A program made the position numbers and the translations under genes. Below are positions 1-47,746 of a stretch of DNA of 64,000 bases, piece by piece. The notes beneath the pieces are model-generated. The model was given only the letters and a program-made list of their open reading frames with translations. It did no database searches and was not told where the DNA came from. Positions within the stretch are counted from its first letter, which is position 1. Every line of letters starts with the position of its first letter. Source of the DNA: Malacoraja senta (taxonomy: Eukaryota); the NCBI GenBank assembly GCA_038087875.1, contig CM075982.1:36642001-36706000 (forward strand). Reading direction: 5' to 3'.

Positions 1-322
1 TCTTTCTTCATATGAAAGTCCTGACATCCCAGGAATCAGCCTGGTGAACCTTCTCTGTACTCCTTCTATGGCAAGAATGTCTTTCCTCAGATTTGGAGAC
101 CAAAACTATACGCAATGCTCCAGGTGTGGTCTCACCAAGACCCTGTACAACTGCAGTAGAACCTCCCTGCTCCTATACTCAAATCCTTTTGCTATGAATG
201 CTAACATACCATTCGCTTTCTTCACTGCCTGCTGCACCTGCATGCCTACTTTCAATGACTGGTGTACCATGACACCCAGGTCTCGTTGCATCTCCCCTTT
301 TCCTAATCGGCCACCATTTAGA
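1..322 (-). mobile_element. CR1-clade LINE fragment (RT C-terminal region), cut by window edge
   Basis: Minus ORF LNGGRLGKGEMQRDLGVMVHQSLKVGMQVQQAVKKANGMLAFI...VRPHLE is nearly identical to the CR1 copy at about 20018-20340. Confidence 0.9.
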
Positions 323-980: not shown

Positions 981-2140
981 AGGGGCTGTCCCACTGCGGC
1001 AACCTAATTTGCGAGTTTAGACGAGTTTGCGCTCGACTCAAACACACAGCATGGTCGACACGTGGTCCTAGGAGGTCACACGCTCGAAGGAAGTTCCCGC
1101 ACACTCGCGGCCTCAGTTTGGTCGAGGAATATTTTTCAGCATGCTGAAAACTTTTCTGCGAGTAAAAATTGGTCGGCATGGTTCTTTTGAACTCGTAGTG
1201 CAGTGGAGTGGGGTCGCTAGGCAGTCGAGGGCAGCAGTAGGCAATCTCCTTCACTGACCGGGCATTTTAAAAGGCTCATTGGAGTTTTTAGAACCAAGGA
1301 AAACCAACCGGCAATGTTAAATGCCTGCTAAACTTTAAAGTATCTCCACTCCTTCTTCCCCCCCCCCCCCCCCTCCCCCTCTCTCCTGGCTCTCTAAAGG
1401 ACTTACGGTAACTGTGCCAGCCGTCTTTTATCTTCCTGTTCATCACAGCTGTGAACTTCAGACAGCGCTTCCCGCAGGGGGGGGCGGGGGGTGTGTGAGT
1501 GTGAGTGTGGGCGTGTGTGCGTGTGCGGTGTGCGTGTGCGGTGTGCGTGGGTGTGGTGTGCGTGTGTGGTGTGCATGTGTGGTGTGCATGTGTGGTGTGC
1601 ATGTGTGGTGTGTGGTGTGTGCGGTGTGCGGTGTGCGGGTGTGGTGTGCGGTGTGCGTGTGTGGTGTGCGTGTGTGGTGTGCATGTGTGGTGTGCGTGTG
1701 CGTGTGTGGTGTGCGTGTGCGGTGTGCGGTGTGCGTGTGCGTTGTGCGTGTGCGGTGTGCGTGTGTGTGGTGTGCGTGTGTGGTGTGCGTGTGTGGTGTG
1801 CATGTGTGGTGTGTGTGTGCGTGTGTGGTGTGCGTGTGTGGTGTGCGTGTGTTGTGTGCATGTGTGGTGTGCGTGTGCGTGTGTGGTGTGCGTGTGCGGT
1901 GTGCATGTGTGGTGTGTGCGTGTGTGGTGTGCGCGGTGTGCGGTGTGCGTGTGTGTGGTGTGCGTGTGGTGTGCGTGTGGTGTGTGGTGTGTGTGTGCGT
2001 GTGGTTTCATCGCTGACGGTCGATCCAGCTCGCTGTTTCATCGCTGACGGTCGATCCAGCTCAAGGTTTTTCAGGCGAGTGCCCTCGAGCTCGAAGGTCG
2101 AAGACAGTCGCTGAAAAGTCGCGTTAGTGGAACAGGCCCT
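981..2140 (-). mobile_element. Same-family Harbinger-like MITE inserted in inverted orientation inside the outer copy
   Basis: TIRs AGGGGCTGTCCCACT...AGTGGAACAGGCCCT; exact TTA duplication at 978-980 and 2141-2143; body is the reverse complement of 383-977 plus 2144-2244. Confidence 0.8.
1490..2004. repeat. Compound (GT)n/(GTGTG)/(GTGC) microsatellite of about 510 bp
   Basis: Directly visible; it explains the low-complexity His/Thr and Cys/Val ORFs in all frames. Confidence 0.97.
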
Positions 2141-2249
2141 TTACAGTGACCTCCTAGGACCACGTGTCGACCATGCGGCGGGTTTGAGTCGAGCGCAAAC
2201 TCGTCTAAATTCGAAAATTAGGTTGCCGCAGTGGTACAGGCCCTTTACT

Positions 2250-4140
2250 GCTTCCAACTTGGTTAGGAGGAGGGAATGACTGCAAGTGAAGTAGGCAGGG
2301 GATAACAGTAAGGGCAGTAAGGTTAGATGAGCCTCAGCCATGAGCTTGACAAGTAGGGCTGAGATTCTTGCTCCCTGTGCAGAGGAGTGTGGGGGCTGTA
2401 GGAAGGATGAGAAACCTGACCATGACATCGTGCACCAGGAAGCCATTCAAGAGCGCAGAGAGAAGAGACACGTGGTCATCATTGGGTATTTGTCATGAAG
2501 ATACAGAGTCCAGAAGGCTGTGTAGCCTGCCGGGTGCCTGGGTTACATCATGTGGATACCATGATGTAGATAGAACAAGGAAACAGATTCTGCCAAGGGA
2601 ATTTATGCAACTGGGTACTAAATCGAAAAGCAGGACAAAAGAGGTAATAACCTCTGGATTGCTACCTGAGCCATGAACAATTTGGCATAGGGTTGTGAAG
2701 ATTAAAGAACTGCACCCATGGCTCAAAGATTGGTGTGGGAGAGGTGGATTTGAATTTGTGGGACGTTGGCACCAGTATTGGGGAAGGAGGGAGCTGTCTG
2801 GATTGACGGACTTCACTTGAACCAGGCTGGGAAACTAGGCAAATGACATAACTAGGGCCCTAGATAGGGCTTTAAAACTAAAGAGTGTGTATAGTGTGTG
2901 GGGCGGGTTATCAATAAAATGAAAATATATGGATGAAATTAAAGGGAAGGAGAGTGCAGGAGGGATTACTGAAGTCTCCAGAAGTAATAGGACAGGAAGT
3001 TTAAGAAGAGATAATAGTCTAAGGTTAGGCAAAATTAGGGCCAATATACGAAGAGGGGTGGAGAATACCGAACTAGAGGTGTTATATTTGAATGCACGCA
3101 GTATACGGATGACCTAATAGCAGAGTTAGAATTTGGTAGGTACAATGTTGTGGGCATCACAGAGACATGGCTGAGAGAGGATCAGAGCTGGGAGCTGAAT
3201 ATCCAAGTTACATGTCCTATTAAAAAGACAGATGGGTGGGCAATGAGGGTGGGGTAGCTCTGCTGTTCAGAAATGAAATTCCGTCCTCAGCAAGGCGTGA
3301 CATAGGATCAGATGTATAATCCTTGTGAATAGAACTAAAAAGACTGTCAGGATGAGAATACCCTGATGGAAGGTATTTACAGGCATCTGAACTGTAGCCG
3401 GAATGTAGGGTACAAATCACATCAAGAGATACAATTGTTATGTAAGAAAGGCAATGTTACAGTGGTCATCAGGGATTTCAATAAGTAGATAGACTGGGAA
3501 AATCAGGTTGGCATTGGATCTCAAGAGAATGAATTTGTAGAATGCCTACGAGATGGCTTCTTGTGGTCAAGCCTACTAGGGAAAAGGCAATTCCGGATTT
3601 GGTATTGAGCAAAGAACCAGGTGTGATTAGGAAGCTTAAAGTAAAGGAACTCCTAGGTGGTAGTGACCATAATATAAAATCCAACTTACAATTTGAGAAG
3701 GAGAAGATGAATTTGGATGTGTCTGTGTTACTATCTAGTAAAGGTGATTACAGAGGTATGAGGGAATAGCTGGCTAAGGTTGATTGGAAAGGGACCCGAG
3801 CAGGAATGACAGTGGAGCAGCAATGGCAGGAGTTTCTGGGAATAATTTGGAAGACCTAGGATTTTTTCATCCCAATGAGACGACCGTGGCTGACAAGGGA
3901 AGTCAAAGACAGCATAAAACTAAAAGAGAGGGACATAATGTTGCAAAGATCAGTGGGAAGCTGGAGGTTTGCGAAGCTTTTAAAAACCAACAGAAGGGAA
4001 CAAAAAAGACAACACGGGGAGAAAAGATGAACTATGAAGGTAAGCTAGCCAATAATATTAAATCGGATAGAAAAAGTTTCTTCTGATATATAAAGAGTAA
4101 AGAATAAGGACGAGTGATAATATGGAATAAAGAAATGGCA
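2250..4140 (+). mobile_element. Degenerate CR1 LINE (ORF1 remnant plus ORF2 AP-endonuclease region)
   Basis: Broken ORFs LEVLYLNARSIR, PTREKAIPDLVLS and LGGSDHN; many stops; boundaries approximate. Confidence 0.8.
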
Positions 4141-4395
4141 GATTAATTTAGCAAGAGTAGAACATTTCCCAATTGGAAATTTACATAAAAATCGTCGCAA
4201 TAATCAAGTCAGTAAAATCTTTAATTTGCTAACTAAGAACAAGAATAAAATTAACCAACAGATAAACTGAGCAAAGCTTCTAATTTTCGAGATGGAAGTT
4301 CAGCACAAGGTAGAAGAATCCCCAACATCTAAATACGTTGCACCATTATCCATTTTTACCGTGGAAATCCCAAACAGTCTCCATCACGTACTTAC

Positions 4396-4459
4396 CATTG
4401 ACGCCTGGTAACACCGCGAACTTTACTGCGATGTTCATTATCAGTTCCAGACCAGCCAC
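4396..4459 (-). CDS. BPI/LBP-family (BPI-fold) gene, exon 13 equivalent (64 bp)
   Basis: ag|GTG...AATG|gtaagt; VAGLELIMNIAVKFAVLPGVN vs human BPI [21 protein letters not shown]; size and phase 0->1 match. Confidence 0.85.
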
Positions 4460-5039
4460 CTTCAACAAGACATTTTGAGAAAGAAAATGTCAAAAAAGAT
4501 CCTCTCAGTTTAATATCCTAGGATAATGTAATGTTTACGGTGGGGAGTGGGGAGTGATGGTGTACAACATTGTTGTGGGGGGCTGGAATTGACAACCCAA
4601 AGACCACTCATATGAACAAGGAAGTCTCAAGCTTCCCAGGATGTCCTCACTGTGGTCCTCTTGACCGCACTCTTGAGCAGAACTGCTCATGGGGTTGAAG
4701 GTTGGAATGTTAGCTTCCTGTTAGCTCATTGAGGAATCTGGAGAGGGAGCTGACCCGGGTTAGAACTGAAACAGACTCAGTGACTACATTTATTTCAGTG
4801 GAGAGGAATGGCTCTATCAGAGACAGGTGCATTATTCAACATATGATTATGGGGAGACCCAGCATGGAAGCAGGCACTTCAGTCCATCCAAATCGTTACT
4901 GGCCAAGAAGTACTGACCACCGTCTCTTTAAGAACACAGACTGCTAGTTACGCTGTGAGAGCCCATTGAAATTGGCATGCAATTGCATCGATCAACACTG
5001 ATGCAAGGATGGGGTAACTCAGTGGATAAGGCAGCATCT

Positions 5040-6345
5040 ATGTCCAGGACACCTCGCACGCCCTTCAACAATAACAACTTTCGGTTTCCAGGCCCCCATT
5101 CATTCCTCTTTACCATGGACATCATCCCCTCTACACCTCCATCAGTCATCAGGAGGCCTTAAGACCTTTTCGCTTCTTCCTCGAACAAAGACCCAACCAA
5201 TTTCACTCTGCTAACACCCTCCTCTACTTGTTCTCAACCTCACCAACCTCTCCTTTGACTCCTCCCACTTTCTCCAAATCAAAGGCGTGGCCATGGCCAC
5301 TCGTATGGACCCATCTATAGCTGCCTTTTTGTCAGGTATGTTGAACAGTCCTTATTCCAGGTGCACAGGGGCCCTATCCCCCAACTCTTTCTCTGCTATC
5401 TCAACGACTGGGGTAGCTCCTGCACCCGTGCAGAACTCATGGACTTTATTAACTTCACCACTAACTTTCAACCTGCTTTCAAATTCACCTGGACTATCTC
5501 GGACACTTCTCTCTCCCCTCTCTCGATCCCTCTGTCTCCGTCACAGGAGACAGACTATCAACAGACATCTATTACAAACCTACTGACTCGCACAGCTATT
5601 TGGACCACACTCCTTTCCATTGCAAAGGTGCTGTTCCCTATTCTCAAGTCTTCTGTTTCCACTGCATCTGCGCCCAAGGTGAGGTGTTCCATACTAGTAC
5701 AACTGAGATGTCACAAATGTCTCCTGTGTCCTGTAGTTCTGCTATTCTCCTACCTCCAGATGCAACATGGACAGAGGTCCCTGGTTCTCACCATTCACCC
5801 TACCAGCCTCCGCATTCAACACACTATCCTCCGACATTTGTGTAATCTCCCAACGGATTACATCACTAATCACATCTTCCCATCTCTATCCCTTTCCGCA
5901 TTCTGTAGGAACCACTCCCTCCACAGCCCCTTGGCTCACTCATCCCTTCCCACCTAAACCACCCCCTCCCCCAGGTACCTTCCCCTGTAATAACCTGTCC
6001 TAATACCGTCTCTCGAATCCATCCAGGGATCCAGGCAGGATAGACAGAGGTTCACATGTACGTCCTCTAACCTCATCTACTGCAACTGGTGCTCCTGATA
6101 TGGTCTCCTGTATATTCGCGAGACCAAACATAGACTCGGTGACTATTTCGCTGAACACTTACGCTTGGTCCTGGTTGCCAACCTTTTAAATTCCCCTTCC
6201 TGTTCCATACTGACCTTTCTGTCCTGGACCTCCTTCATTGCCGGAGTGAAGCCACACACACATTGGAGGAACACAACCTCATATTTTGCTCGAGTACCTC
6301 ACAACCCAGCAATATGAATACTGAATTATTTCATTTTAAGTAACT
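5040..6345 (+). mobile_element. Degenerate Penelope-like retroelement (RT plus GIY-YIG)
   Basis: GVAMATRMDPS resembles PLE RT GVAMGTRMGPS; DFINFTTNFQPAFKFTW; LVLTIHPTS; 3' part resembles SSNLIYC...YIGET. Confidence 0.8.
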
Positions 6346-6894
6346 TTCAAACTCCCCTCCCCCTAGGCTCCTATCTGATCATTTTTAGCACTCCACTGAG
6401 CCGCAACAATCAAACGCCAGCTTTGAAGATAAGATGCTGCTACTAGATATGTACTGTTGAGGTAGTGTGAATATGGCAGCTCATCCCTCAGATATAGGCC
6501 AGACCAAACTGTCCCATAGAACCTTGTGCATTCCAGCACAGACAACAAAGGGTCCAATAGGATTTGGATGAGAGGAAGAGCTACTATCAACACTGGCTAC
6601 TTCATCTCAACTAGGTAGATAGAAGATAGCAACATTTACATTCCAGATTGGACATTTCCAAAGACATTGTTTCTCGTGATTTTGGATTGAAAGAGCTGAA
6701 GAACTCTTCAAGTAGAATCACAATATTAACACATCAGTATTTTGAAATATCGAGGAATTTCAAAAGAATATCAGCAAGAAACATTTGACACCAAGACAAG
6801 GGAACACTAGGGTAATGACTAAAAGTTTGGTCAAAGAATTAGACTTGAAGTAGGGTCGATAAGGAAGAGATGGTGAGAGAGGCAAGAGATGGAA

Positions 6895-9500
6895 CGTTTC
6901 AGGTGGTGAACTCCAAATTCAGATGTCCTGGAGTGGAAAGCCAACAAATGCTGCAGAGACAGAGAAACTGCGAGAAAGGGATGACATCCTGAGAAGAAAG
7001 AAGGCAGGAGGATATGTAGTGAAGTTGGCTGTGGGTGTCAGTGAGTTTGTAGCAGATGTCTGTGGACAGACTATCTCCCGAAATGGAGACAGAGAGATCA
7101 AGAAAGGAAAAAGAGATGTGACAAGAGTCCAAGTAAATTTGAGGGCAGCATGGAAATTGATGAAGTTCATGAAATCAACAAATACTGCACTAGACACAAT
7201 AAGCTGGAGTAACTCAGCGGGTCAGACAGCATCTCTGGAGAAAAGGAATAGATGATGTTTTGGGTCGAGACCCTTCTTCAGACTGAGAGTCAGGGGAAAG
7301 AGGAACGATAGATATAGATGGTGATATAGCAAATGCAGGTGGCAGCACCAATGCAGTGCAGAACAAGTTGAGGTGGTTCTAGGGGTATATTTCGAACAAA
7401 GAGTATTCAATGTTGTGAAGGGAAAGGCAGGCCTAGCTAGATCCCATGTGAGTGCCCATGGCTGAGAGGAATCAAAAGAAGTTCCAACGGGTGAGGATAT
7501 GTTCCAACAGGTGGAGGTGAGCGCAAGTTGAGGAGAAGGTTGTTCGTTCTCTGTTCTAGGAAGAACTAGGACGCGTGCTGAAGGACTGCGCAGACCAGCT
7601 GGCTGGAGTCTTTACGAGGATTTTCAACCAGTCTCTGGCCCAGTCCACTGTCCCATCCTGTCTGAAGTCCTCCACCATAGTCCCCTTGCCCAAAAAAAAA
7701 ACCACATTTCCAGTCTCAACGACTACCGGCCAGTCGCACTCACACCAGTGGTGATGAAGTGCTTTGAAAAACTGGTCCGGGTTCACATCACATCACTCCT
7801 GCCCCGAAGCTTTGACCTCCACCAGTTTGCGTATAGAGCGAATAGATCCACAGAGGATGCTGTAGCCACAGCCCTCCATGCTGCACTGTCACATCTGGAG
7901 CAGCGGGGGAGCTACGTGCGGATGCTCTTTGTGGACTACAGCTCTGCTTTTAACACCATCCTTCCCCACAAACTGGTGGACAAACTGGGGGACCTGGGAC
8001 TTCCACACTCCACCTGCATGTGGATAAAGAGCTTCCTGTCGGGTCGCAGTCAGAGAGTCAGAGTGGGCCATCACACATCTACGGCCCTCAGCCTCAGTAC
8101 CCGGCTCTCCACAGGGCTGCGTGCTGAGCCCCCTGCTTTACACCATCTACACATATGACTGCACCCCCGCCCACCACAGTAACACCATTGTCAAATTCGC
8201 GGATGACACCACGGTGGTGGGGCTCATCTCTGGGGGGGATGAGTACGCCTACAGGGATGAGGTGGAGCAGCTGACAGGGTGGTGTGGAGAAAATAACCTG
8301 CTCCTCAACACCTCAAAGACCAAGGAGCTCATAGTAGACTACAGAAAGAAGAAAACGGACATTACACCACTAATCATTGATGGGGACTGTGTGGAGAGGG
8401 TGGCGGATTTCCGCTTCCTGGGAATCCACATTGAGGAGGACCTGACTTGGAGCGTGAACACCTCTGCGCTGCTCAAAAAGGTCCAGCAGAGACTGTACTT
8501 CCTGAGGGTGCTCAGGAAGAACAACATCACCCAGAGACTGCTGCTATCCTTTTATCGATGCTCAATAGAGAGCATCTTAACATACTGTGTATGCGTGTGG
8601 TACACCAGCTGCACAGCGGCTAAGAGGAAAGCGCTCCAGAGGGCTATTGACAATGCCCAGAAGATTATCGGCTGCCCTTTCCTCACCTTGGAGGACCTAC
8701 ACAGTTCCCACTGTCTCAAAAAATTGCAGAAGATCATAAAGGACATTTTCCACCCCGGTCACTCCCTGTTTGTACTGCTGCCGTCAGGCAGACGGTACAG
8801 ATCAATGAGGACAAGGACAAACAGACTCAAAAACAGTTTTTATCCCACAGCAATAAATACACTTAATGGAGCCACCAAATGAGTACAGGTGTGCTACACA
8901 CCAAAGGGACTGTGAAATCGACAGAAGAATGTGTTTTTTTTCATGTTATTTATTTTAGTTGTTTATCTTAGACTTTTGCTCTAAGAAAATGTGTGAATGG
9001 TGCACTGACTGGTTGGCATTTGTAATTTCGTTGTACATGTTTACATGTTATAATGACAATAAAGTATTCATTCATTCATTCATTCATTCATTCAAATGGA
9101 GAGCACTAAGGCCTTCCTGGTGGGGGATGGGGTGCGAAGGTACTGGACGTCCATGGTATAGATTAGGAAGTGTGGGACAAGGCATTAGAATTTGAGGTAT
9201 GAGGAGATGACTTCGGTAGGGCAAAAGCAATGTAAACAAAGGGCCGGCTTGCTAGGGTACTCATGTCCATGGAATTGGGCTGGAGATAGAAACAGGCAGT
9301 GCAGGGTTTGGGAACAACTAGAGTGGTAGTTGGGGAGGGAACATTGTCAGAAGGCATGAGATCTGTGATGGATTGGGAGATAGTGGTCTGATGTTTGTCG
9401 GTGATGTCATGGTCAAGGGGTGTGTATGAAGAGATGTTCGAGAGGCTCAGCATGGTAGAGTTCTGTCAGCTAGATTACATCAGCACCACCCTTGTCCGTT
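6895..9500 (-). mobile_element. Degenerate Penelope-like fragments, host of the Rex1 LINE at 7567-9094, with a pLTR piece at about 7190-7320
   Basis: FINFHAALKFTW and FLDLSVSISGD remnants; host sequence ...ctaggaagaa|aatggagagc... resumes after the LINE. Confidence 0.65.
7567..9094 (+). mobile_element. 5'-truncated Rex1/Babar-type LINE
   Basis: RT motifs [25 protein letters not shown] and [12 protein letters not shown]; frameshift near 8100; AATAAA at 9058 followed by a (TTCA)n tail. Confidence 0.88.
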
Positions 9501-9887
9501 CCCTCCATAAACGCTGCCTGACACGCTGACTTCCTCCAGAACTTTGTTTTTAACTCAATTCCACCATTTGCAGTTGCAGTCACATTCAGAACTTTGGTTG
9601 TTTATTATCTGGGGCTACATGATCATCATCACTGCACAAGGTGTTGGTCATGGACCTGAGAACTTTGGTTCCATCATCCACTGAGGATTTCCCAACACTT
9701 TCTGCTTGTATTTAAAATCTTCAACATCCTTTGAACCTTTGGCCCACAGTGTCCATGCCAAAAATGTTGCCAAGTTTAACTAATGTCGCCTCTGCATGCA
9801 CGTGATCCACATCCCTCCCTATTCAGTGAGGTGGAAGTATCTTCCTAAATGTTGTGATGAGACACTTCCAAGTTAAGTTCAGAAAGG

Positions 9888-10730
9888 AAGGTAGACAAAA
9901 GTGCTGGAGAAACTCAGCGGGTGCAGCAGCATCTATGGAGCGAAGGAAATAGGCAACGTTTCGGGCCGAAACCCTTCTTCAGACTGATGGAGGGTGGGGG
10001 AGCGGGGAGAAGAAAGGAAAAAGGAGGAGGAGCCCAAGGGCTGAGTGAGAGCTAGGAAGGGGAGGAGACAGCAAGGGCTACCGGAATTGGGAGAATTCAA
10101 TGTTTATACCACCAGGATGCAGACTGCCCAAGCGGAATATGAGGTGCTGCTCCTCCAATTTACGGTGGTGCTCACTCTGGCCATGGAGGAGGCCCAGGAC
10201 AGAGAGGTCGGATACGGAATGGGAGGGGGAGTTGAAGTGCTGAGCCACCGGGAGGTCAGGTTGGTTAATGCGAAACGATCGCCAAGCCTATGCTTGGTCT
10301 CACCGATGTAGATCAGCTGACATCTAGAGCAGCGGATGCAATAGATGAGGTTGGAGGAGATGCAGGTGAACCTCTGTCGCACCTGGAACGACTGCTTGGG
10401 TCCTTGAATGGAGTCGAGGGGGGAGGTAAAGCGACAAGTGTAGCATCTCTTGCGGTTGCAAGGGAAAGTGCCCGGGGAGGGGGTGGTGCGGGAGGGAAGG
10501 GAAGAATTGACAAGGGAGTTACGGAGGGAGCGGGCTTTGCGGAAAGCAGACGGGGGGGAGATGGGAAGATGTGGCGAGTGGTGGGGTCACGTTGGAGGTG
10601 GCAAAACTGACGGAAGATTATTTGATGTATGTGACGGCTAGTGGGGTGAAAGGTGAGGACTAGGGGGACTCTGCCCTTGTTGCGAGTGGGGGGATGGGGA
10701 GAGAGAGTAGTGCTACGGGCGTCTGCCAAG
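9888..10730 (-). mobile_element. 5'-truncated Penelope-like element (GIY-YIG end plus pLTR with intact hammerhead-like core at 9951-9988)
   Basis: VPLVLTFHPTS and SSNLIYCIRCSRCQLIYIGETKHRLGDRF; minus strand reads CTGAAGAAGGGTTTCGGCCCGAAACGTT. Confidence 0.85.
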
Positions 10731-10946
10731 TTAAGATGACTAGAATCGGCGTATTAAGGTGCTGTTACACTGTGCCACCATAACGTTGTTTTTGAATTGA
10801 ACAATGGTATTTAATTGCTTTAAAAAGTGTAACGCTTACCTTCTTATATGATGACTGTTACTTTGATCACTGACTAATTTGCACCCAAGACTCAAGTTTC
10901 ATCTCAAACAAACAAGACTTAAAATCATACAAGAAGATTTTCTTAC

Positions 10947-10989
10947 CGGAACAGGGCCAACATTAGAACGACCAAGAGACAATTTCAGA
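10947..10989 (-). CDS. BPI/LBP-family gene, exon 12 equivalent (43 bp)
   Basis: tttttgtacag|T...CCG|gtaaga; (S)LKLSLGRSNVGPVP vs BPI RLLLELKHSNIGPFP; 43 bp, phase 2->0. Confidence 0.88.
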
Positions 10990-11771
10990 CTGTACAAAAA
11001 GACAAAGTAAAAAAGCAGAACACCATTACATCACAAAGGGAATTGTCTGGATTTTAACAATGTTTGTGCAATCTGACTTTAAACTCCTTCAGTAGATAAT
11101 GGTACAGTGAAGTGAGACAACAAGCAACAAATATAATGGCAGCTTGGGTTTGTACTGAATACTTGGATGGACAGGATAGGATCGCAGACATTTTTAAACT
11201 ACCCCACATTTCCAGAGGCGCTGTTCTCTTTGCATCCTGAGATCCAGACGTATCGCCAGGCCTCAGTGCACGCATGCCCTTGACCTCTCCCTGCAACAGC
11301 ACCGACCCTTTCTATCTCAGTGCTGTCCGAGCACACAGTTTCACTTTATCCTTTGCCACATTCAGTGCTGCAGGAAACAGTTTTACTTATTTTCAGATGG
11401 CAAGGATGGCAAACTTCAACAGCCTTTGGTCTTCAATAGCCCAACTGACATTTCTCCTCCTCTACTTTCCTCTGGCCTCCCTCTCTCCCCTCCAGTTTCA
11501 GCCCTTGCCGTGTTTTCACCTCAATCCGTCTGATCTTCCCCTCTCTGATCCTGAACAATGGCCACACTAACAAGCATTTTTTCTTGTTTTTGTTTATATT
11601 CACAGGGTCTGAGATCTGCTCAACATGGTCATAGATTCATAATTTCACAACTGGAATGCATGCAGGCTTGATATTTACCTTATATTCACAGATATTTCTT
11701 CCCATATGCAGCCAAACACAATAAAGATGGCTGTGGCACAAATGCTAGCTTCTAATCGGAATAAGGAATGA

Positions 11772-12075
11772 GGGGCGGCATAGTGGTGCAATGGTAGAGC
11801 TGCTGCCTCACAGCTCCAGAGACCCGAGTTTGATCCTGACCTCGAGTGCTGTCTGTGTGGAGTTTGCACCTTCTCCCTGTGACCATGTGGGGTTCCTCCG
11901 GGTGCTCCGGTTTCCTCCCATATCCTAATGATGTGCAGATTTATAGGCTAATTGGATGATGTAAATTACTCCTAGTGTGTGCAAGTGGGATAACAGGAGT
12001 CGTGTGAACGAGTGAGCGATGGTCAGTGTGGATTCGACGTGCCAATGGGCCTGTTTCCAGGCTGTAGCTAAACTA
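11772..12075 (+). mobile_element. tRNA-derived V-SINE (HE1-like)
   Basis: A/B-box-like head followed by the V-domain tgtctgtgtggagtttgcaccttctccc; homologous to 13971-14276. Confidence 0.75.
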
Positions 12076-12992
12076 ACATAACATGCATGAACTAAAATAA
12101 CATGCAAAATGTCACGTTTATCAGAGGAATGATATGATTTATGATTATGATGCTACCTGATAACCTCTTGCTTGTTGCATGAAAAATATTTCTTTATCCT
12201 TTTTTCAACTTTGAAAAGAGATCATAATCAATTTAAATGGCATCGCGTCTCATGGCATATAATGATCTCCTGATGAAACACTGGCATTTGGGTGAGTTAT
12301 ATGTGAGCTCGATGGTGAAAATCAGTTGCTCGAACTTTATCTTATTCAATGCACCCACTTTGACAAATTCCATTCAATGTCACGAGACAGAAGTTTCAGA
12401 AAATTCTGGTGGATTAATCCTAATACAGAGGCTGCATCCTCTCTGAGATTAACTAATAACGTACATCGAGGGTCAAATTTATTTAGATGTATCTTACTCG
12501 ACAGGCTTCGGTACTATGTTAATAAAGGAAATAAGCAAAAAAATTAATCAATAATGACTGAATTTGGCTATTAATGAATGGTAATTGTTAGTTGTGCATT
12601 CAGTATAAAAGTTATGGATTGAAGCCCCAATCTAAACATTTGAACACATAATCCACACTAATTTTAAGGTTTCGGCCTGAAACGTTGCCTATTTCCTTCG
12701 CTTCCTTGTGCACCCGCTGAGTTTCTCCAGCATTTTTGTGTACCTCTAATTTTAACTATGACTGATTTTTTGCAGGGATAGCTCCATCCACAAATTCAGA
12801 TGGTTAAAGATGTTTGAACATTTTGCCAATACAGAGCAGGTCGTTTTTCCAGTATCCCTCTGATGTGTATTTATTCTCCAATGCCAAGGATCTTCGATGT
12901 TTGTTGTAATAAATTGTGTGGTAATTATCTTACCCTGCACAGACTGGGGCCATGTGAGGGCATGAATGGTCTTTCAGTTGTCTTTCCCTTAC

Positions 12993-13060
12993 CTATTCAG
13001 TTTTAGGGATCCAATCAGTTTCATCTGAACGATACGCACACGAGCAGAGACACTCGCTTG
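12993..13060 (-). CDS. BPI/LBP-family gene, exon 11 equivalent (68 bp)
   Basis: ttgttgcag|CAA...AATAG|gtaagg; QASVSARVRIVQMKLIGSLKLN(S) vs BPI [23 protein letters not shown]. Confidence 0.9.
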
Positions 13061-13159
13061 CTGCAACAAGACAAAATAATCAAGGAGATTTCTCATGGCA
13101 ATAGTTTTGCCAAACGTAAAATTTTTAGTACTACAGAAAAAGACGATTTTAGTACTTAC

Positions 13160-13327
13160 AATGTTCAGGACAAAAAGCGATGCAAGGGTTGAATTTGGCA
13201 GGACTGCGCACACGTCAAATGCACCAAATGCTTGAACGTTTATGATTTTATTTGCAGCCTGCAGAACTGGCGATCGAGTGGCTCGCAGGCGCATTTCCAT
13301 TGGCATGTTAGGATAGAGCTTCGCCAG
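13160..13327 (-). CDS. BPI/LBP-family gene, exon 10 equivalent (168 bp)
   Basis: cag|CTG...ATT|gtaagt; LAKLYPNMPMEMRLRATRSPVLQAANKIINVQAFGAFDVCAVLPNSTLASLFVLNI vs BPI VAKKFPNMKIQ...FAVLPNSSLASLFLIGM. Confidence 0.95.
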
Positions 13328-13583
13328 CTGTTGAGACGTATATTCTATTAATATTTAGGTAATTTATGTCATTTCCCCCACAGATTGTGCCTGATCTCTA
13401 AGCATCAGTATTTTATGTTATTTTTATTTCATGTTTCCAGAGCCTGAAGAATTTTTCTCTGGTGATGTTCGTCTTTCCCATCATAGAGTAACGTGCAAAG
13501 AACAGTGATGTGATAACAATGGTGATATGGGATAAGGAGCGTTTAATATCAGACAAGAGTTTGCAAACCCATGAAACACTTAC

Positions 13584-13643
13584 CCGAGGTACGATTACAC
13601 TGAAGGACTTTGTGTTTAATCTGACAGGCGATAGACTCGGAAT
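13584..13643 (-). CDS. BPI/LBP-family gene, exon 9 equivalent (60 bp)
   Basis: ttttccccag|ATT...CGG|gtaagt; IPSLSPVRLNTKSFSVIVPR vs BPI [20 protein letters not shown]. Confidence 0.93.
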
Positions 13644-13970
13644 CTGGGGAAAACAGAAAGGAATTAGCCAATTTTCTGGGGGTATTTTGTGTGACTGTAT
13701 CAAACATCATATATACATAAATTCTTCAAAGGCAAGTGTGGATTTCAAATCTCATCTGCAATTCTGAGATTGGATTTATAAATCACTGCAGATTGCATTG
13801 ACAAAAATCTGGAGCATTATTAAAGTTATTGCAAAATATATAGTATTTCTAAAGAACTCATTCTCTAATAATAAATCTAGATTTACTGAAAGTAAATAAT
13901 CAATATACCAGTTCTGCCTCCTAACCTATGCTTCATCTTCATTTCATATTTTCCACTTGAAGTAGAGGTA

Positions 13971-14465
13971 TGGCACGGTGGTGCAGCGGTAGAGTTCCTG
14001 CCTTACAGCGCTTGCAGCGCTGGAGACCCAGGTTCGATCCCGACTACGGGTGCTGTCTGTATGGAGTTTGTATGCACTCCCCGTGGGTTTTCTTCAAGAT
14101 CTTCGGTTTCCTCCCACACTCCAAAGACGTACAGGTATGTAGGTAAATTGGCTTGGTAAATGTAAAAAGTGTCCCTAATGTGTGTAGGATGGTGTTAATA
14201 CGCGGGGATCGCTGGTCGGCGTGGACCTGGTGGGCCAAAGGACCTGTTTCCGCTCAGTAGCTCTAAACTAAACTAAAGGAAATGTACTGCAGCGAATCAG
14301 CCTACCCGAGTGTCTTTGGGATGTGGGAGGATATTTGAGCCTCCAGGCCAAACCCATGTGGCTGCAGGGAGAACACGCAAACTCCTGTCAGACAGCACCA
14401 AAGGTCAGGGCTGAACCCTGGTCACTGGAATACTGAGATGGCAACACGACCTGCAGAACCATTGT
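13971..14465. mobile_element. Two tail-to-tail V-SINE (HE1-like) copies: 13971-14276 (+) and about 14290-14465 (-)
   Basis: tRNA-like head ggcacggtggtgcagcggtagag...ggttcgatcc, V-domain and (ctaaa)n tail; the second copy is an inverted partial. Confidence 0.75.
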
Positions 14466-15019
14466 GCCTCTCTGCCAATTGATGAACCATGGAAACAGGC
14501 CCCATAAATCACCAGACATTGCTACCCCTTGTTGCTCTGTGACCAAACAAAGCTCATATTCATATAATAATTTATTATTTTAAAACAATGTCATTGTTCA
14601 AACAAGCGACAATTGAAAATGGAGTAAGTTTCTGACAGGAAGGTGCTTTATTTGTTACTCCTTCCTCGCACAGTGAAATGAAATCAGCAGCCTGGAATTT
14701 GGAGTAAGAACAACAGTGAAACCATTGACTCCTCAATGATGCCATGAAGTAAATTAGGCAGCAATGATCAGTGTTCCTAATAAACGTAATCAAAGACGGA
14801 ATCAGACAGTCCAATGCGCCCCCACTTGCGTCACTGCACAGGTGATAACGAGTGCTTGTCCAGTGCATCTTCAGAGTAGTTGTGATCAGCAGGTAAATGT
14901 TGCCTCAGTGTTACACCTCCACATCGTTTCACAGCAATCTACTGCAGAAACCCACCTCCAGTGAAAATAATAACCTCGTTTGTATACACTGGGGCAGTGA
15001 AAGGATGCCTTTTACCCAC

Positions 15020-15196
15020 CATTTTGTCAGTGATTTTCTTTTGTAAGACTCCAGCTTGATAATACACAAATCCTGCTGAGTTAGCAAGAAAATCAGATAT
15101 TCCCAAGTACAACATGCGATTGGATTGACTGGGAAGGCTGATTGGGGGTGGCTTGAAGGGAGGATCTTTCTTTTGTCCCACTCTGTTGAATTGACC
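15020..15196 (-). CDS. BPI/LBP-family gene, exon 8 equivalent (177 bp)
   Basis: tttttatag|GGT...ATG|gtgggt; GQFNRVGQKKDPPFKPPPISLPSQSNRMLYLGISDFLANSAGFVYYQAGVLQKKITDKM vs BPI GEFY...PPFAPP...[25 protein letters not shown]. Confidence 0.95.
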
Positions 15197-15794
15197 CTAT
15201 AAAAAGAATTAGATTTCAAATCTCAGATACTGCAAGAAGTCTCAAAAGGCACAGATAATGGAAAGAGCTGATCAATAACATTGGTTTTAACAACTGCCTG
15301 TTCATTTTCAAACTTCTGAATATAAACTTCAGTTGCCAGTTGAACCTTAGTTTGGACGAGACTACAAGATCACAGACCATCACTGCCTTGGTCCTAATGT
15401 GAACCAAAGTACAGGATTGTGGAGATGAGTGTGTTACTGTTCCCACAGTTCTTGGAACAGTAGGGTCAAAATCTTACGGATGTCATGGTCAGAATTGTTT
15501 CTCTAAATAATGTCAAGGTGATGGACAAAGTGCACTGTTTAGAAGCTTATCTTAATTAACATTAAGCTTTTTAAACTTAGGTCAGCTTCTGTTGTGCTAG
15601 AAAACTGAGGTTACCAATAAGCCTGGATAGTAAATATCTTTCACGAGATCACTGGTAACTTATAAATAGAGAACTCAAAAACAGTATTGGATATGTCTAA
15701 AGGCAACAGAACTATGAAACAGCCCAAATGTCAACCCATCCAACTGCCCATGTACACTCGCATCACCCTCCCCTCCCCAGGAGTCAGGGCCTAC

Positions 15795-15886
15795 CTTAAA
15801 ATCCAGGTCCATGGCGTTATTTGAAATTTGAATTTGATTAACCAGTGAATAGTCAACCTCAGCAAATGGGTTAATTTTGAACGATA
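15795..15886 (-). CDS. BPI/LBP-family gene, exon 7 equivalent (92 bp)
   Basis: tgttcttag|TA...AAG|gtaggc; (V)SFKINPFAEVDYSLVNQIQISNNAMDLDFK; size and phase 1->0 match BPI/LBP. Confidence 0.92.
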
Positions 15887-16443
15887 CTAAGAACACAGAG
15901 GGAAAAGAACATGAAATATAATGTGTAAGAAGGAACTGCAGATCACCAAAGTTTTACACTTGACCCGAAACGTCACCCATTCCTTCTCTCTAGAGATGCC
16001 ACCTGACCCGCTGAGTTACTCCAGCATTTTGTGTCTATCTTCAACATTAAATATAAAATATCAATACAAAAGATTTGAAATTCGCAAACCAGATTGTTTT
16101 TTGGCTACCACCAGGGTGAAAGGAGAGGACTGCATTTGGCTTCTGTTCCAGGTCTACGTGTGGACTTTTAGAGGCACAGTTAGTCTGACTCATGACCTTC
16201 CCCAGCTCTTAATGAGTTGAGATGAAAACAACCAAGTTTGGCAGTGGCTCACACGATGAGCTTTTGCTTTAGTCCATATCAAGTCTGTTGCCAGGACTTT
16301 CTCTTTCAGTTTCTGGAACACATCGCTTACTTCCGCAGCTGTCTGGCTGTTGCTGAGGTCCTGATCCTTAACGATGAGTATTGGTTCTTTCACCACCAGA
16401 ACCTGTTTTCCAATCCTTGTTGAGATTTAAATCCCAAGGTTTA

Positions 16444-16637
16444 AGGGCCTGTCCCACTTGGCCATCATTTGCACGTCATGCAGTTGGCGCGCGAAGATTT
16501 TGTGAATCCCCAAATCCTGGGCGCTGCGGGCGTAATGCACGCCATGCACGCATCACATGCGTGTCATGATGTGCGCGTTGTGCATCATGACGCGTAAATG
16601 ATGTCGCGCAAATGAGGCCCCAAGTGGGACAGGCCCT
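16444..16637. mobile_element. Short palindromic Harbinger-like MITE (194 bp)
   Basis: TIR AGGGCCTGTCCCACTTG...CAAGTGGGACAGGCCCT; TTA on both sides (16441-16443 and 16638-16640). Confidence 0.85.
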
Positions 16638-17591
16638 TTACAAAACTTCTTTGTGTTGTCACCTATGTATCCAGCCCTTCCAACCTTCTCAAATTACCAT
16701 ACAAATGTTGTAATCTCATCTTTACTCCCCATATGGCATTGACAGAGCGAGGCTCATTCATCTTTCTCTTTCAATACACCCCTGCTGACATTTTCCAGTT
16801 CTCTGGTCTGCATTCCTCCTCAGAAACCAATCCTGCCCCTCGATCTAGCCCCATGGCCAACACTTTAATTGCCTTCAAAATGTTTCTAAGCGAATGGCCA
16901 TTAATTGTTGGGTATAGGCTTTGGTTCCTGTCGCTATCTCCAGAGAGAGCTCAGAATTCACAGTCATCCCATCTTTTGAGTGAAATGTTAAATTCAGGCA
17001 CACAATTAAAATAAGCTGCCACTGTTTCAATTGCCCTTTCCCTTGGATTCTATCAATATTTATTTCTCAACCAATACCACTAAAGGCCATCCTGCCATTA
17101 GTAACTCCAGCTGCCACAAATGGACTGGTCTCAAATTTATATTTAATTGGTTGCAGAGCACTTTGAGATATTATCCAAGGATGACACAAGAAAGGTGCTG
17201 GAAACTGGAATAAAAAAGCAAACTGCTGGAGAAACAACAGGTCAAACATGGGCAGAGGGGAGAAATGATTGTCATTTCAGGTGAAAATCCTGCATCGATC
17301 GAGAGGAGAGACAGACAGTATAGAGGGCCGAGGTGACACAGGAACTGAGGAGGGGGGGCAGGATGGAGAGGTTGAGCTAGGGAAGGGGGCGGGGGGGGGG
17401 GGGGGAGGGGATGGTATTGGGACAGCAGGTGGGTGATAGGTGGAGGTAAACAAAAAAGGGCTGATGAAGCCAGGTGGGGGGAACAGGGAGAGTGAGGGTG
17501 AGGGTGGAGACAGCTTCTGGAGAAAGGGAAGCAGCAATCTTGAGAGAGTTTTTGGAGGGTGATGGAAGAATGAGGAGGGAGAACATAAAAC

Positions 17592-17791
17592 NNNNNNNNN
17601 NNNNNNNNNNNNNNNNNNNNNNNNNNNNNNNNNNNNNNNNNNNNNNNNNNNNNNNNNNNNNNNNNNNNNNNNNNNNNNNNNNNNNNNNNNNNNNNNNNNN
17701 NNNNNNNNNNNNNNNNNNNNNNNNNNNNNNNNNNNNNNNNNNNNNNNNNNNNNNNNNNNNNNNNNNNNNNNNNNNNNNNNNNNNNNNNNNN
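17592..17791. other. Assembly gap (200 N)
   Basis: Run of exactly 200 N, flanked by oppositely oriented Penelope-derived fragments. Confidence 0.99.
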
Positions 17792-18629
17792 GTCACCTCA
17801 GAACTCAAGGCCTGCTGGATCTGCCTGCTGCTAACCATTTTACCTTTCATTCCCATAATGACCTTTCTGTATTCAAGCACAAACTGGAGGAACAGCATCT
17901 CATATTCTACTTGGGTAGCTTGCAACCTAATGGTATGAACATTGGATTCTCCAATTTTAGGTAACTTCTTCTTCTTCTTTTCGTGTCTTTGAAGCTGGTT
18001 GGCTATATGACAGTTTCCCATTCCTTTACACAGTCCTTTGCTTTTTTATTGAACACTGCAAGATCCTTTGAGCTGCACTGGTTGGGTAGTAGGGGGCAGA
18101 CAAGGCAGTGCTGCATTGTGTGGTCCTCTTCTCCACTAATGTAACTTAAGCACCCCCCCTGTTTTCCCTCCCCCCTCCCCCTTTTATACCCCCTCATCCC
18201 TGTGCCCCACCTGGATGCACATCCATTTCTCCTTTCAGGACAAGAATCAAAAGTTAAGAATGTTCAATTGTCATATGCACCATCAATGGCAATGAAATTC
18301 TTAATTGCTCCAGCTTAACTGTCTCAATAAAGCAAAGACACACACACAAATAATAATCAATACATAAGTGATACTAGACAACAAAAATAGTACAAAACCA
18401 AAATCTGTGGTGTAACGAAAAACACAGTTTATAAAACATCATAGTTGCTGAAGTAGTGGTTAGTGTTTTGCTGTGTCCAAGAGCCTGATGATTGCTGTTC
18501 ATGATTTTCAGCCTCCTGTACCTTCTCCCCAATGGTAGTAGCAAAATGATAACATGGAGAGGATTGTGTAGGTCTTTCATATTGGCTGCCTTTTTGAGGC
18601 AGTACCTACCATTCTCTGTATCCTTAGAT

Positions 18630-18812
18630 AGACACAAAAAGTTGGAGTAACTCAGCAGTACAGGCAGCATCTCTGGAGAGAAGGAATAGGTGATATTTCA
18701 GGTCAAGACCCTTCTTCAGACTGGAAGGGTCTCAACCCAAAACGTTACCCATTCCTTCTCTCCAGAGATGCTGCCTGTCCCGCTGAGTTACTCCAGCTTT
18801 TTGTGACTATCT
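18630..18812. repeat. Fold-back (head-to-head) Penelope pLTR-derived element with arms of about 85 bp
   Basis: agacacaaaaagttggagtaactcagc...gacccttc / gaagggtc...gctgagttactccagctttttgtgact. Confidence 0.8.
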
Positions 18813-18869
18813 TTAGTTTCAATCAGCATCTGCAGTTCCTTCTTACACACTCTCTGTGTCCTTCATTCA

Positions 18870-20988
18870 TAAATTCAAGGAGCATAATTAGGCCATTTAG
18901 CCCATCAGGTCTACTACACCATTCAATCATGTCTGATCTATCTTTCCTTTTCAACCCCATTTTCCTGCCGCTGCCCCATAACCCCTGACGCCCATATTAA
19001 TCAAGAACCTATCTCTGGCTTAAAAACATCTATTGATTTGGCCCCCATAGCCGTCTGTGGCAATGAATTCCACAGATTCACCACTCCGACTAAAGAAATA
19101 CCTCATCATCTCCTTTCTACAGGTATGCCCTTTCATTCTGAAGCTATGGTCCCAGTTTCTCCCACCAGTGGAAACATCCTCCTCACATTCACTCTATCCA
19201 GGACTTTCACTACTCCGTAAGTTTCAATAAGGACCCACCTCATCCTTCTACCCTCATGCGAGTACAGGCCCAGTGCCTTCAAATGCTCATAATATGTTAA
19301 CCCACTCATTCCTGGGATCATTCTCTAAAACCTCCTCTCGATCCTCTCCACGCCACTACATCCGGGGAATTACAGACCAGTTAGTCTAACATCGGTAGTG
19401 GGGAAACTGCTAGAGTCACTTATTAAAGATGGGATAGCAGCACATTTGGAAAGTGGTGAAATCATTGGACAAAGTCAGCATGGATTTACGAAAGGTAAAT
19501 CATGTCTGACGAATCTTATAGAATTTTTCGAGGATGTAACTAGTAGAGTGGATAGGGGAGAACCAGTGGATGTGTTGTATCTGGACTTTCAGAAGGCTTT
19601 CGACAAGGTACCACATAAGAGATTAGTATACAAACTTAAAGCACACGGTATTGGGGGTTCAGTATTGATGTGGATAGAGAACTGGCTGGCAAACAGGAAG
19701 CAAAGAGTAGGAGTAAACGGGTCCTTTTCACAATGGCAGGCAGTGACTAGTGGGGTACCGCAAGGCTCAGTGCTGGGACCCCAGCTATTTACAATTTATA
19801 TTAATGACCTGGATGAGGGAATTGAAGGCAACATCTCCAAGTTTGCGGATGACACTAAGCTGGGGGGGGCGGTGTTAGCTGTGAGGAGGATGCTAGGAGA
19901 CTGCAAGGTGACTTGGATAGGCTGGGTGAGTGGGCAAATGTTTGGCAGATGCAGTATAATGTGGATAAATGTGAGGTTATCCACTTTGGTGGCAAAAACA
20001 GGAAAGCAGACTATTATCTAAATGGTGGCCGATTAGGAAATGGGGAGATGCAGCGAGACCTGGGTGTCATGGTACACCAGTCATTGAAAGTAGGCATGCA
20101 GGTGCAGCAGGCAGTGAAGAAAGCGAATGGTACGTTATCTTTCATAGCAAAAGGATTTGAGTATAGGAGCAGGGAGGTTCTACTGCAGTTGTACAGGGTC
20201 TTGGTGAGACCACACCTGGAGTATTGCGTACAGTTTTGGTCTCCAAATCTGAGGAAGGACATTATAGCCTTAGAGGGAGTGCAGAGAAGGTTCACCAGAC
20301 TGATTCCTGGGATGTCAGGACTTTCATATGAAGAAAGACTGGATAGACTTGGCTTATACTCGCTAGAATTTAGGAGATTGAGAGGGGATCTTATAGAAAC
20401 GTACAAAATTCTTATGGGGTTGGACAGGCTAGATGCAGGAAGATTGTTCCCGATGTTGGGGAAGTCCAGGACAAGGGGTCACAGCTTAAGGATCAGGGGG
20501 AAATCCTTTAAGACCGAGATGAGGAAAAACTTTTTCACACAGAGAGTGGTGAATCTCTGGAACTCTCTGCCACAGAGGGTAGTCGAGGCCAGTTCATTGG
20601 CTATATTTAAGAGGGAGTTAGATGTGGCCCTTGTGGCTAAAGGGATCAGAGGGTATGGAGAGAAGGCAGGTACGGGATACTGAGTTGGATGATCAGCCAT
20701 GATCATATTGAATGGCGGTGCAGGCTCGAAGGCCCGAATGGCCTACTCCTGCACCTATTTTCTATGTATCTATGTATCCTTCCTCAGATATGGGGCCAAA
20801 ACTGCTCCCAGTACTCCAAATTCGGTTTGACTAGTGCCTTATAAAGCCTTTACATTACGTGCCTGTTTTTGTATTCTAGCCCTCTCGAAATAAATGCAAG
20901 TATTGCATTCACCTACCTTACTACCGATTCGACTTGCAAATTAACTTTTGGGGAATCCTGCACCAGCACTCCCAAGTCCCTTTGCAGG
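18870..20988 (-). mobile_element. Older CR1 3' fragment, host of the younger CR1 at 19364-20775
   Basis: MIPGMSGLTYYEHLKALGLYS remnant; host reads ...actacatcc|ttcctcagatatgggg across the insert. Confidence 0.75.
19364..20775 (+). mobile_element. Young 5'-truncated CR1 LINE (RT)
   Basis: [24 protein letters not shown] and SKFADDTKL; single frameshift at the G-run near 19862-19870; (TCTATGTA) tail; ATCC at both junctions. Confidence 0.92.
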
Positions 20989-21680
20989 TAGATAAGATTA
21001 ATTTAGATTAGTATCATGTTCACGCTGAGATGGTGGGCCAGAGATGACGTTCTTGCTTTGTACTATTTTATGTTCCTTATATATTCTAGGCAGAGACTGA
21101 CTGAAATTGAGAAATTGCTACTGAGGCCACGATTCGATTAACCATTATGTTGATGATAAAGCGGGATCAGGGAACAAATGGTCTTCTCCAGCTCCTGGCT
21201 CGTGTGAAGGCTTTAGAGAAAGTGCACAAGAGATTTACTCAGTTGAATCTGGACTATAGATGGTATGACAGAGAGAAACTGGTCCCATTGGTTAAGCTTG
21301 TTATTTTTTAAAGCAGATGAAGACTGAAGATTATTGACCATCCTGGTTTGTTTACATAGAGCCGGTGTAGTCTCAATGGGCTGAATGGTCTTTTACATTT
21401 TGTGAACATTGTGGTTCTAAAGTTGAAAGATGTAACCTTAGAGGACCAAGATTTACCTGAATTAAAACTGATTCCACAAATGGCTTGTTATGTGGGGAGA
21501 TGCACTAATTAACTTAATTGAAACAATTGCTAACCATGAGATAAATGTCAAATTCTTGTTTTTTTCCCCCTGTTGCTAGTTGTTCTGATCTGGAATTCAC
21601 AGTAACTGTGCATGTGGAATCGGATACATTGTTAAAGTTGATTGCCAGTCAATGGACAAAGTGCAGGAGACTGAAACTAA

Positions 21681-22254
21681 AAGGCCTGTCTCACGAATCT
21701 GTGGTCATTGGCGGCGAAACGGGAAGAATCTGCCGCCATAGACCGCGCACTCGTGAGAAAGAACAATTCCCGGGCCGTGCGACGGTGTTCCCAACACCGC
21801 GCGGTGCAAAAATAAAATCGACAATGTCGAAAACCAAATACTCACCGCACAACCTCCACCTGTGATGCACGAGTGCGCACGGCCGCCGCCAGTGTGGGTC
21901 GAGCGCCGTGCGTCAAACCTCCTCTGCCACAGCCTCCGCCAGTGACGCACGTGCCGCCGCCAGTGAGGCACGTGTGCTGCGCGGCCGCAGGCACAGCCAC
22001 CGCTACAGCGCCGCGATCAGGATGCCGCTGGTGAGTCACGTGCGGGGGGCCGACGTCATCGCAGTCGGCCCGCCCTTTTTTTACTTACCGCAAGCACGTG
22101 GGACCCGCCGTGTTTGAATTAACTCGGCCCCCGCGCAACATCCGTGCGGCGCTCCGGTGGATAGCCTCGACGCTCTCGCCGTTGCCGCGCGGTCCTAGCT
22201 ACCGTCTACACCGCGCTTCACCGCCGATGACCGCAAACAGGTAAGACACGGCCT
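21681..22254. mobile_element. CpG-rich Harbinger-like MITE (574 bp)
   Basis: Imperfect TIRs AAGGCCTGTCTCAC...GTAAGACACGGCCT; TAA on both sides (21678-21680 and 22255-22257). Confidence 0.7.
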
Positions 22255-22316
22255 TAAATTATACTTCTTGGTCTTCTTGTCTTTCCATTTTGTATGATTT
22301 GATAAGCTTAGCTAAC

Positions 22317-22371
22317 CTTGTAGTGTTGCTGTCATATGGTTTATTGAATCAAAAATGCTGTCAAACCAGAT
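22317..22371 (-). CDS. Candidate divergent exon 6 of the BPI/LBP-family gene (55 bp)
   Basis: tttctcctctgtctcag|ATC...CAAG|gttagc; IWFDSIFDSINHMTATLQ(V); phase 0->1 joins exon 7 to form GTA=Val. It is shorter than the usual 61-64 bp and lacks the conserved Cys. Confidence 0.38.
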
Positions 22372-22529
22372 CTGAGACAGAGGAGAAACAAATTTAGCAG
22401 TAGCTTTAGGAATTAACCAGCCCTTCACAAAATTTGTTTTGTGTCATTAGGTGTTACATGACTGAGGACCGCATGAATAGGTGCTTTAGATCAGAATCTG
22501 ATCAGTGAAATAGGATCAAGTAAAGTTTA

Positions 22530-23765: not shown

Positions 23766-24708
23766 GTCCTCGTGTAGGTCGTTTGAAAAGAGCGTATCTC
23801 GACTCTTATCTGATTGCCCAGACATTTTCTTACTTGTACCAATCAGGAAGTGAGAGCAGTTTATCTAATCCAGGTGTACCACCATTACCCCTTTTGCACT
23901 TTAGCAAGGTCAATTAATCCTGTGTAATCCTGGAATCTGAACCATTAGACTCCTGGTGGACCGATCGTAACCTCTGCAGGAACTTTATCCACAGTCCCAG
24001 CAATTGCATGCAGTTGCTACACTCGAAGCCAAACTCAAGAGTTCTATACATTCTTAACTTACAAAACTCCAAATGACATTCTTTTGCTTTAAAACTCAAC
24101 TATATCCACTTAATCCAAACCCGAAACCAAGGCCCCAAGGCGTTTACAACCCAGGATGTTTAGATTAGATTTTATTCCTTGTCATTTGAACCTCAAAGAG
24201 GCTCAAACGAAACTCTGTTTCCACAGCCATACAAACAAAACAATTCCTACACGACACACAAACAATTCAATTTACAGAAAACATCTATCACAGTGAATCT
24301 CCTCCTCACTGTGATGGAAGGCAAAGTCTTTTCTCTCTTTTCTCTCCCCTGCACCATGATATGTTACATATATCATTAGAAATAGTTTGACAAGATAAAC
24401 AACAGTGTTTTGTTTTTTAAGACATTTTGTTGGTTAAAGGATAAATATTATGGCTCTATTATTGGAGATAATCACTTCATTATTTAGGGGCTATTATTCC
24501 CCTTATTATTTCGGGCTTCAATTGGTCACATCGGAAATACACTTGAATTTATGCTAATATGGCAGTGTAAGTTGTGCGAGAAGTTTCATGTGTGGGAATT
24601 GAGCACACTCCCTCAAATGAAGGCTGAGATAGTACCCTTGATCTATCTTAAGGCAATGATACGTATTAACGGAATAAACTATATGATCATTGGTCGCTAA
24701 AGAGTTAA

Positions 24709-47590: not shown

Positions 47591-47746
<156 letters not shown>

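Follow-up and report, generated by a model that had tools for sequence, protein, structure and literature searches.

A BPI-like gene downstream of G-alpha-s in the skate Malacoraja senta is very probably an ordinary two-domain gene interrupted by a large assembly gap

Results

The window analysed here, a stretch of 64,000 nucleotides of Malacoraja senta DNA, carries exons of the G-alpha-s gene on its minus strand and, downstream of them on the same strand, a set of exons of the BPI/LBP type. The last coding exon of G-alpha-s was located by motif look-up in a six-frame translation and lies at 32740..32880 (minus strand), with an approximate upper boundary. Further G-alpha-s exons on the same strand lie near 33.9, 39.7, 47.6 and 50.6 kb, and the Pfam G-alpha model supports three pieces of the gene, namely the exons at 47.6 kb and 39.7 kb and the last coding exon. 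Read in the direction of the genes, G-alpha-s is followed by a 6.5 kb spacer, an intergenic block 'B' (24404..26263, minus strand, single-copy in the window), an intergenic block 'A' (21542..22427, minus strand), a fragment of a LINE-type retrotransposon, an assembly gap, the remainder of an intron 6 and, finally, exons 7-13 of the BPI-like gene. The LINE fragment (19367..20778, plus strand) is intergenic, encodes a piece of reverse transcriptase (Pfam RVT_1, E 6e-23) and belongs to a type found in many copies in all loci. The gap, at 17592..17791, is the sole N run of the window and is written as 200 N. No RNA genes were found anywhere in the window with Rfam.

The BPI-like gene is represented by seven minus-strand exons of 92, 177, 60, 168, 68, 43 and 64 nt, each bounded by a GT donor and by an AG acceptor that follows a pyrimidine tract. 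The first visible one, exon 7 (15795..15886), corresponds to residues 213-243 of the Rhinoraja longicauda protein P0001, that is, to the linker and the start of the C-terminal half, and shows 87-100% identity to skate proteins by tblastn. It is followed by exon 8 (15020..15196), exon 9 (13584..13643), exon 10 (13160..13327), exon 11 (12993..13060), exon 12 (10947..10989) and exon 13 (4396..4459), the last exon within the window. Exons 9 to 13 were also recovered by tblastn, exon 12 by its match to residues 399-416 of P0001. A family profile HMM of the C-terminal half found all seven exons (exon 12 at E 0.007), and the Pfam domain PF02886 (LBP_BPI_CETP_C) matches the two largest, exon 8 (E 1e-13) and exon 10 (E 3e-7), above its curated cut-off.

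Joined together, exons 7-13 give 672 nt that are open in a single frame of 223 codons; the other two frames contain 14 stops each. A preliminary description of this locus had listed the same seven exons, with these sizes and canonical splice sites, and all of them were recovered at the positions expected from the sizes; the open C-terminal BPI/LBP-like stretch that it described is likewise present, the count being 223 codons here rather than 224. Exon 7 begins in phase 2 and has no start codon, so that an upstream coding exon is required.

With the 177-nt exon as query, a full HMMER scan led to the 477-aa protein P0001 (XP_078275362.1, 'bactericidal permeability-increasing protein-like', from Rhinoraja longicauda), to which this exon is 85% identical by phmmer. 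A search with P0001 in turn returned 67 proteins, every one of which has both the N-terminal domain PF01273 and the C-terminal domain PF02886. The 223 residues of the window are 89% identical to P0153 of Leucoraja erinacea (475 aa), 88% identical to P0158 of Amblyraja radiata (472 aa) and 79-82% identical to three Rhinoraja proteins. The relatives in these three species are two-domain, 15-exon BPI-like genes, and the sizes and AG/GT sites of exons 7-13 are the same in the window and in five related loci. Exons and introns alike are collinear with the related loci over window positions 2322-17591 (blastn), at about 84-94% identity for Leucoraja (L003), 82-94% for Amblyraja (L002) and mostly 83-91% for Rhinoraja P0152 (L005); identity is lower for the two other Rhinoraja paralogues, and introns range from 75 to 94% over all skate relatives. 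The lowest dS values, 0.07-0.13, were obtained against Rhinoraja P0152, Leucoraja P0153 and Amblyraja P0158. Judged by its sequence, the locus is a member of the BPI/LBP-type family.

The N-terminal half of such a protein was sought in the readable letters of the window in two ways. Residues 1-212 of five skate BPI-like proteins gave no match in the readable window by tblastn with word size 2, and a profile HMM of the N-terminal half, built on 41 BPI-like proteins of vertebrates, scored no better than E 0.46 anywhere in the window, with this hit lying on the wrong strand. In a control run on the Leucoraja locus the same profile recovered 6 of 6 N-terminal exons, with E values from 4e-23 to 5e-4. 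The preliminary description had seen no match to exons 1-5 between position 15887 and the 3' region of GNAS, and for the readable letters both searches agree with it. Its suggestion that these exons are too divergent to be seen was rejected, because the visible exons have 88-89% protein identity to their nearest relatives and the N-half profile, which finds the control exons, finds none in the window. The expected place of the PF01273 domain starts 7 nt inside the N run, and exons 3-5, which encode the conserved disulphide of the N-terminal domain and the basic LPS-binding tip, are expected in the gap.

The two edges of the gap are informative in this respect. Collinear blastn blocks and base-level alignment to Leucoraja, Amblyraja and Rhinoraja identify the letters between exon 7 and the gap (15887..17591, minus strand) as the 3' part of intron 6. 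In the base-level alignment the readable base 17591, directly beside the N run, is intron-6 position +8 in 4 of 4 relatives; in these, exon 6 is followed by the donor GTATGTT and then by G TTTTA..., and it is this G that is base 17591 of the window. The exon-6 donor is therefore expected 7 nt inside the N run. Homology to the intron 6 of the relatives is cut by the gap at the last base of the contig, with no fading before it. The last 400 bases before the gap consist of low-complexity pyrimidine/purine sequence or repeat, at a read depth thousands-fold above the single-copy level, and a stretch of such low complexity could plausibly explain why the contig stops at this point.

The right edge (17792..18306, minus strand) is upstream intergenic DNA; in Rhinoraja, the stretch similar to it is found 8.9-9.2 kb upstream from the P0001 start codon. 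This match comprises two collinear blocks of 88.6% and 76% identity, only about 350 bp in all, and part of it is dispersed repeat. Neither exon 5 nor intron 4/5 sequence was found to the right of the gap by tblastn, by comparison with related loci or by the N-half profile. We considered whether the N run could be a same-length mask of 200 bases, in which case it would be taken up by exon 6 and intron 5, with exon 5 due at 17792; since no exon 5 or intron 4/5 sequence follows there, the run does not represent 200 real bases. The two gap edges match places 17.9 kb apart in the Rhinoraja locus L001, and by the Leucoraja spacing the missing length is about 18 kb. With these two loci as yardsticks, the '200 N' would stand for roughly 18 kb that include the promoter and exons 1-6. 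The option, raised in the preliminary description, that the N-terminal exons are hidden in the gap is thus favoured by intron-6 homology that runs to the contig edge and by intergenic DNA on the far side, except that the true length of the gap is not 200 bases.

The same stretch of intron bears on a second option from that description, namely that this is a genuine C-domain-only or re-headed TULIP gene, with exon 7 spliced to a novel 5' exon or with a start within intron 6. What speaks for such a gene is the lack of visible N-terminal exons and nothing else. No new 5' exon, promoter or start codon was found in 15887-17591, which is ordinary intron-6 sequence throughout; this stretch of 1.7 kb next to exon 7 is conserved with the two-domain relatives and contains no new open exon. 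The phase-2 start of exon 7 needs an upstream coding exon, and all 67 relatives have both domains. We therefore regard a C-domain-only or re-headed gene as extremely improbable.

Contigs derived from sequencing reads provide a further view of the gap. Two runs, X2 and X3, come from the window's own species, with 0 mismatches over hundreds of bases. Their contigs cover both flanks of the gap and leave the N run itself uncovered, and no joint that bridges the gap is among the joints listed for them. A 2280-nt contig of X2 with single-copy depth places its first 114 letters on 17905-17792 without a mismatch, and its remaining 2166 nt lie beyond this edge, inside the gap. Positions 16585-17405 are covered by another X2 contig, which does not overlap with the 2280-nt contig; the latter is thus not simply the left flank. 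As the 2280-nt contig reaches 2166 nt into the gap, the real gap must be at least about 2 kb.

A third run, X1, comes from a related organism, not from the window's species, and its kind is uncertain ('RNA? (probably DNA)'). X1 covers exons 7, 8 and 10 and none of the single-copy parts of the introns, and its pieces end at exon boundaries. Two X1 contigs continue upstream of the acceptor at 15886, for 304 and 554 nt. Under the exon plan of the family, such lengths are in keeping with exons 6-4 and 6-2, respectively; if X1 is DNA, the extensions could be diverged intron instead of exons. Because the kind of X1 is uncertain, we count these extensions as supportive only.

The read data also bear on the possibility that the locus is a truncated pseudogene, in which the promoter and exons 1-6 were lost in a real deletion and the gap happens to coincide with the edge of that deletion. 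Such a reading is in line with the absence of any N-terminal exon from the readable letters and with the frequent presence of partial copies in tandem arrays, such as that of three genes in Rhinoraja. It may also draw on the dN/dS of the visible exons 7-13, which is 0.95 against Amblyraja, 0.91 against Rhinoraja P0152 and 0.55 against Leucoraja. However, the annotated full-length skate genes show dN/dS values of 0.5-1.15 among themselves (for example, 1.15 between Leucoraja and Amblyraja), and the value therefore describes the family rather than the Malacoraja senta copy. The high family-wide ratio is probably that of a fast-evolving immune gene. With the whole family at 0.5-1.15, dN/dS does not separate a functional from a decaying copy, and constraint on the visible exons may conceivably be relaxed. 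Other observations weigh against a deletion, which would be expected to leave continuous sequence rather than a contig end: homology stops exactly at the contig end and not earlier, a same-species contig reaches at least 2.1 kb into the gap, and all 14 splice sites of exons 7-13 are intact, as is the frame of 223 codons. A truncated pseudogene is, in our assessment, very unlikely.

At the other end of the gene, exons 14-15 were not found to the left of 4396 in the window by tblastn with skate BPI-like proteins. A minisatellite and part of a LINE are present in the first 2-2.3 kb of the window, and the Amblyraja exon 14 is placed a further 2 kb past the position that matches 1912 of the window. 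The gene thus simply runs off the window, with exons 14-15 beyond its left end.

The intergenic blocks place the gene in a tandem context. In Leucoraja, block A has two counterparts that flank the BPI-like gene, at 6.3-7 kb on its upstream side and at 6.7-7.3 kb on its downstream side, and belongs to a tandem unit; the spacer that includes this block is present to either side of the gene, with a period of about 46.7 kb. In Leucoraja and Rhinoraja, the counterparts of block B are situated between members of the array, 1.3-3 kb downstream from the orthologous genes. In Rhinoraja, P0152, P0001 and P0151 follow one another in this order, arranged head to tail on a single chromosome; each of the three genes spans about 25-27 kb, and the intergenic distances are about 20-25 kb. 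The loci of the other skates were compared with 10 kb flanks, which are shorter than the intergenic distance. Of the three Rhinoraja genes, the left contig of the window is most similar to P0152, the first of the array, and this fits the order seen in the window.

Arrays of this kind, with tandem units of about 47 kb and similar intergenic blocks as in Leucoraja, are easily mis-joined, and the join in the window is a placeholder gap. It is therefore conceivable that the left contig (1-17591) was misplaced in scaffolding, and that it comes from another member of the array or from elsewhere instead of following directly on G-alpha-s. Against this, the left contig is closest to the first gene of the Rhinoraja array, and blocks B and A on the right contig are consistent with its order and orientation. 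We consider a scaffolding error unlikely; it would in any case overlap with the reading preferred here, and the gene would still be an ordinary two-domain gene.

Discussion

We conclude with high confidence that a large assembly gap interrupts what is an ordinary BPI-like gene with two domains, and that the N-terminal half of this gene is unassembled rather than absent. According to this model, the window would contain exons 7-13 of a 15-exon gene of the BPI/LBP family, and this gene would head a tandem array of skate BPI-like genes on the downstream side of G-alpha-s. The contig with exons 7-13 would stop in a low-complexity stretch at position +8 of intron 6, 7 nt from the exon-6 donor, and the scaffold would then join it, via a placeholder of 200 N, to a contig that starts in the upstream intergenic region. 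The promoter, the signal peptide and the N-terminal barrel, encoded by exons 1-6, would accordingly lie unassembled inside the gap, as far as can be judged from sequence comparison. By analogy with its family, the protein may be expected to be secreted and boomerang-shaped and to bind lipid or LPS, as BPI does.

Were the first gene of the array truly to have lost its promoter and N-terminal barrel, the locus would be either the source of a C-barrel-only transcript driven from elsewhere or a young truncated pseudogene; we hold such a loss to be highly improbable. The gene is of an already known kind, and its family is annotated in three other skates.

The locus mainly carries a caution for the reading of genome assemblies. 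A placeholder of 200 N can hide some 18 kb and half a gene, and an apparent loss of a domain that starts within a few bases of a contig end is not to be taken as biology. What the analysis yields beyond this is mildly useful only, namely the tandem arrangement of the skate BPI-like genes, probably beside G-alpha-s, and the high dN/dS that these genes show. A search of the literature on BPI in cartilaginous fish returned nothing relevant.

The closest known counterparts of the gene are the skate BPI-like genes of Leucoraja (P0153), Amblyraja (P0158) and Rhinoraja (P0001, P0151 and P0152), in which the sizes of exons 7-13 and their splice sites are kept. The assemblies of these relatives also show exons 1-6 and 14-15, whereas in Malacoraja senta exons 1-6 fall in the gap and exons 14-15 outside the window. 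More distant are human BPI and mouse LBP, at about 40% identity or less. P0001 matches from end to end the solved structures of human BPI (1BP1/1EWF, E 5e-99), mouse LBP (4M4D, E 4e-78) and CETP (E 4e-12). The run of exon sizes 92/177/60/168/68/43/64 is also that of exons 7-13 in human BPI and LBP. Unlike human BPI and mouse LBP, the skate genes stand in a tandem array, probably next to G-alpha-s. The BPIFA/PLUNC proteins belong to the same TULIP/BPI fold superfamily as the skate gene and are the products of real single-domain genes that keep the N-type barrel; the preliminary description had used them as its comparison for a one-domain protein. These proteins are truly single-domain, whereas the single-domain look of the skate gene is, on the reading favoured here, an artefact of the assembly.

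Skate BPI-like genes

In every pairwise comparison among the skate BPI-like genes, dN/dS of the C-terminal half (exons 7-13 of the window against the loci L001-L005 of Rhinoraja, Amblyraja and Leucoraja, 223 codons only) falls between 0.5 and 1.15. This range suggests that the family is evolving rapidly, possibly adaptively.

The BPI-like genes of skates lie in a head-to-tail tandem array. Three of them are found in Rhinoraja longicauda (L001, L004 and L005) on CM130184.1, at about 4.78-4.92 Mb. At the Leucoraja erinacea locus L003, the spacer located 5' of the gene recurs 3' of it (191-3701 against 46084-50406), with a spacing of about 46.7 kb.

The Amblyraja radiata RefSeq protein P0158 looks like a mis-modelled gene, with anomalies at positions 26192-26260 and 42990-43036 of its locus L002. 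Exons 14-15 are present at L002 47751-47825 and 49787-49828, yet they were left out of the model, which terminates via read-through of the exon-13 donor. About 20 intron-6 residues are also translated past exon 6 (SMLFYILPHSAIAFQKLSQDA), and the intron stretch read in this way is an open frame in the window (17519-17590) and in Leucoraja as well.

Mobile elements and repeats

A GC-rich LTR-retrotransposon remnant on the minus strand (36250-39100), located within a G-alpha-s intron, has long open frames, an Integrase_H2C2 match and a CpG o/e of 0.91. LINE-type elements occupy 56335-57768 (-), 7575-8882 (+) and 42897-44503 (-); one contains a reverse-transcriptase open frame of 478 aa and another an endonuclease (Exo_endo_phos) domain. 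An ALKBH8_N-like Pfam match occurs on both the 478-aa frame and a second reverse-transcriptase fragment, and is C-terminal to the reverse transcriptase in these elements.

One short element, of the interspersed or inverted-repeat kind, is very abundant (18626-18850, 15959-16045, 7191-7295, 52772-53010 and others), with many copies in each skate locus fetched and a read depth of up to about 10^6 to 10^7 words. Most of the places where contigs break in the read lay-out, and most of its spurious joints, are caused by this element. Intron 13 of the BPI-like gene carries a minisatellite (1491-1931) that matches L002 45654-45773, the array being shorter in Amblyraja than in the window.
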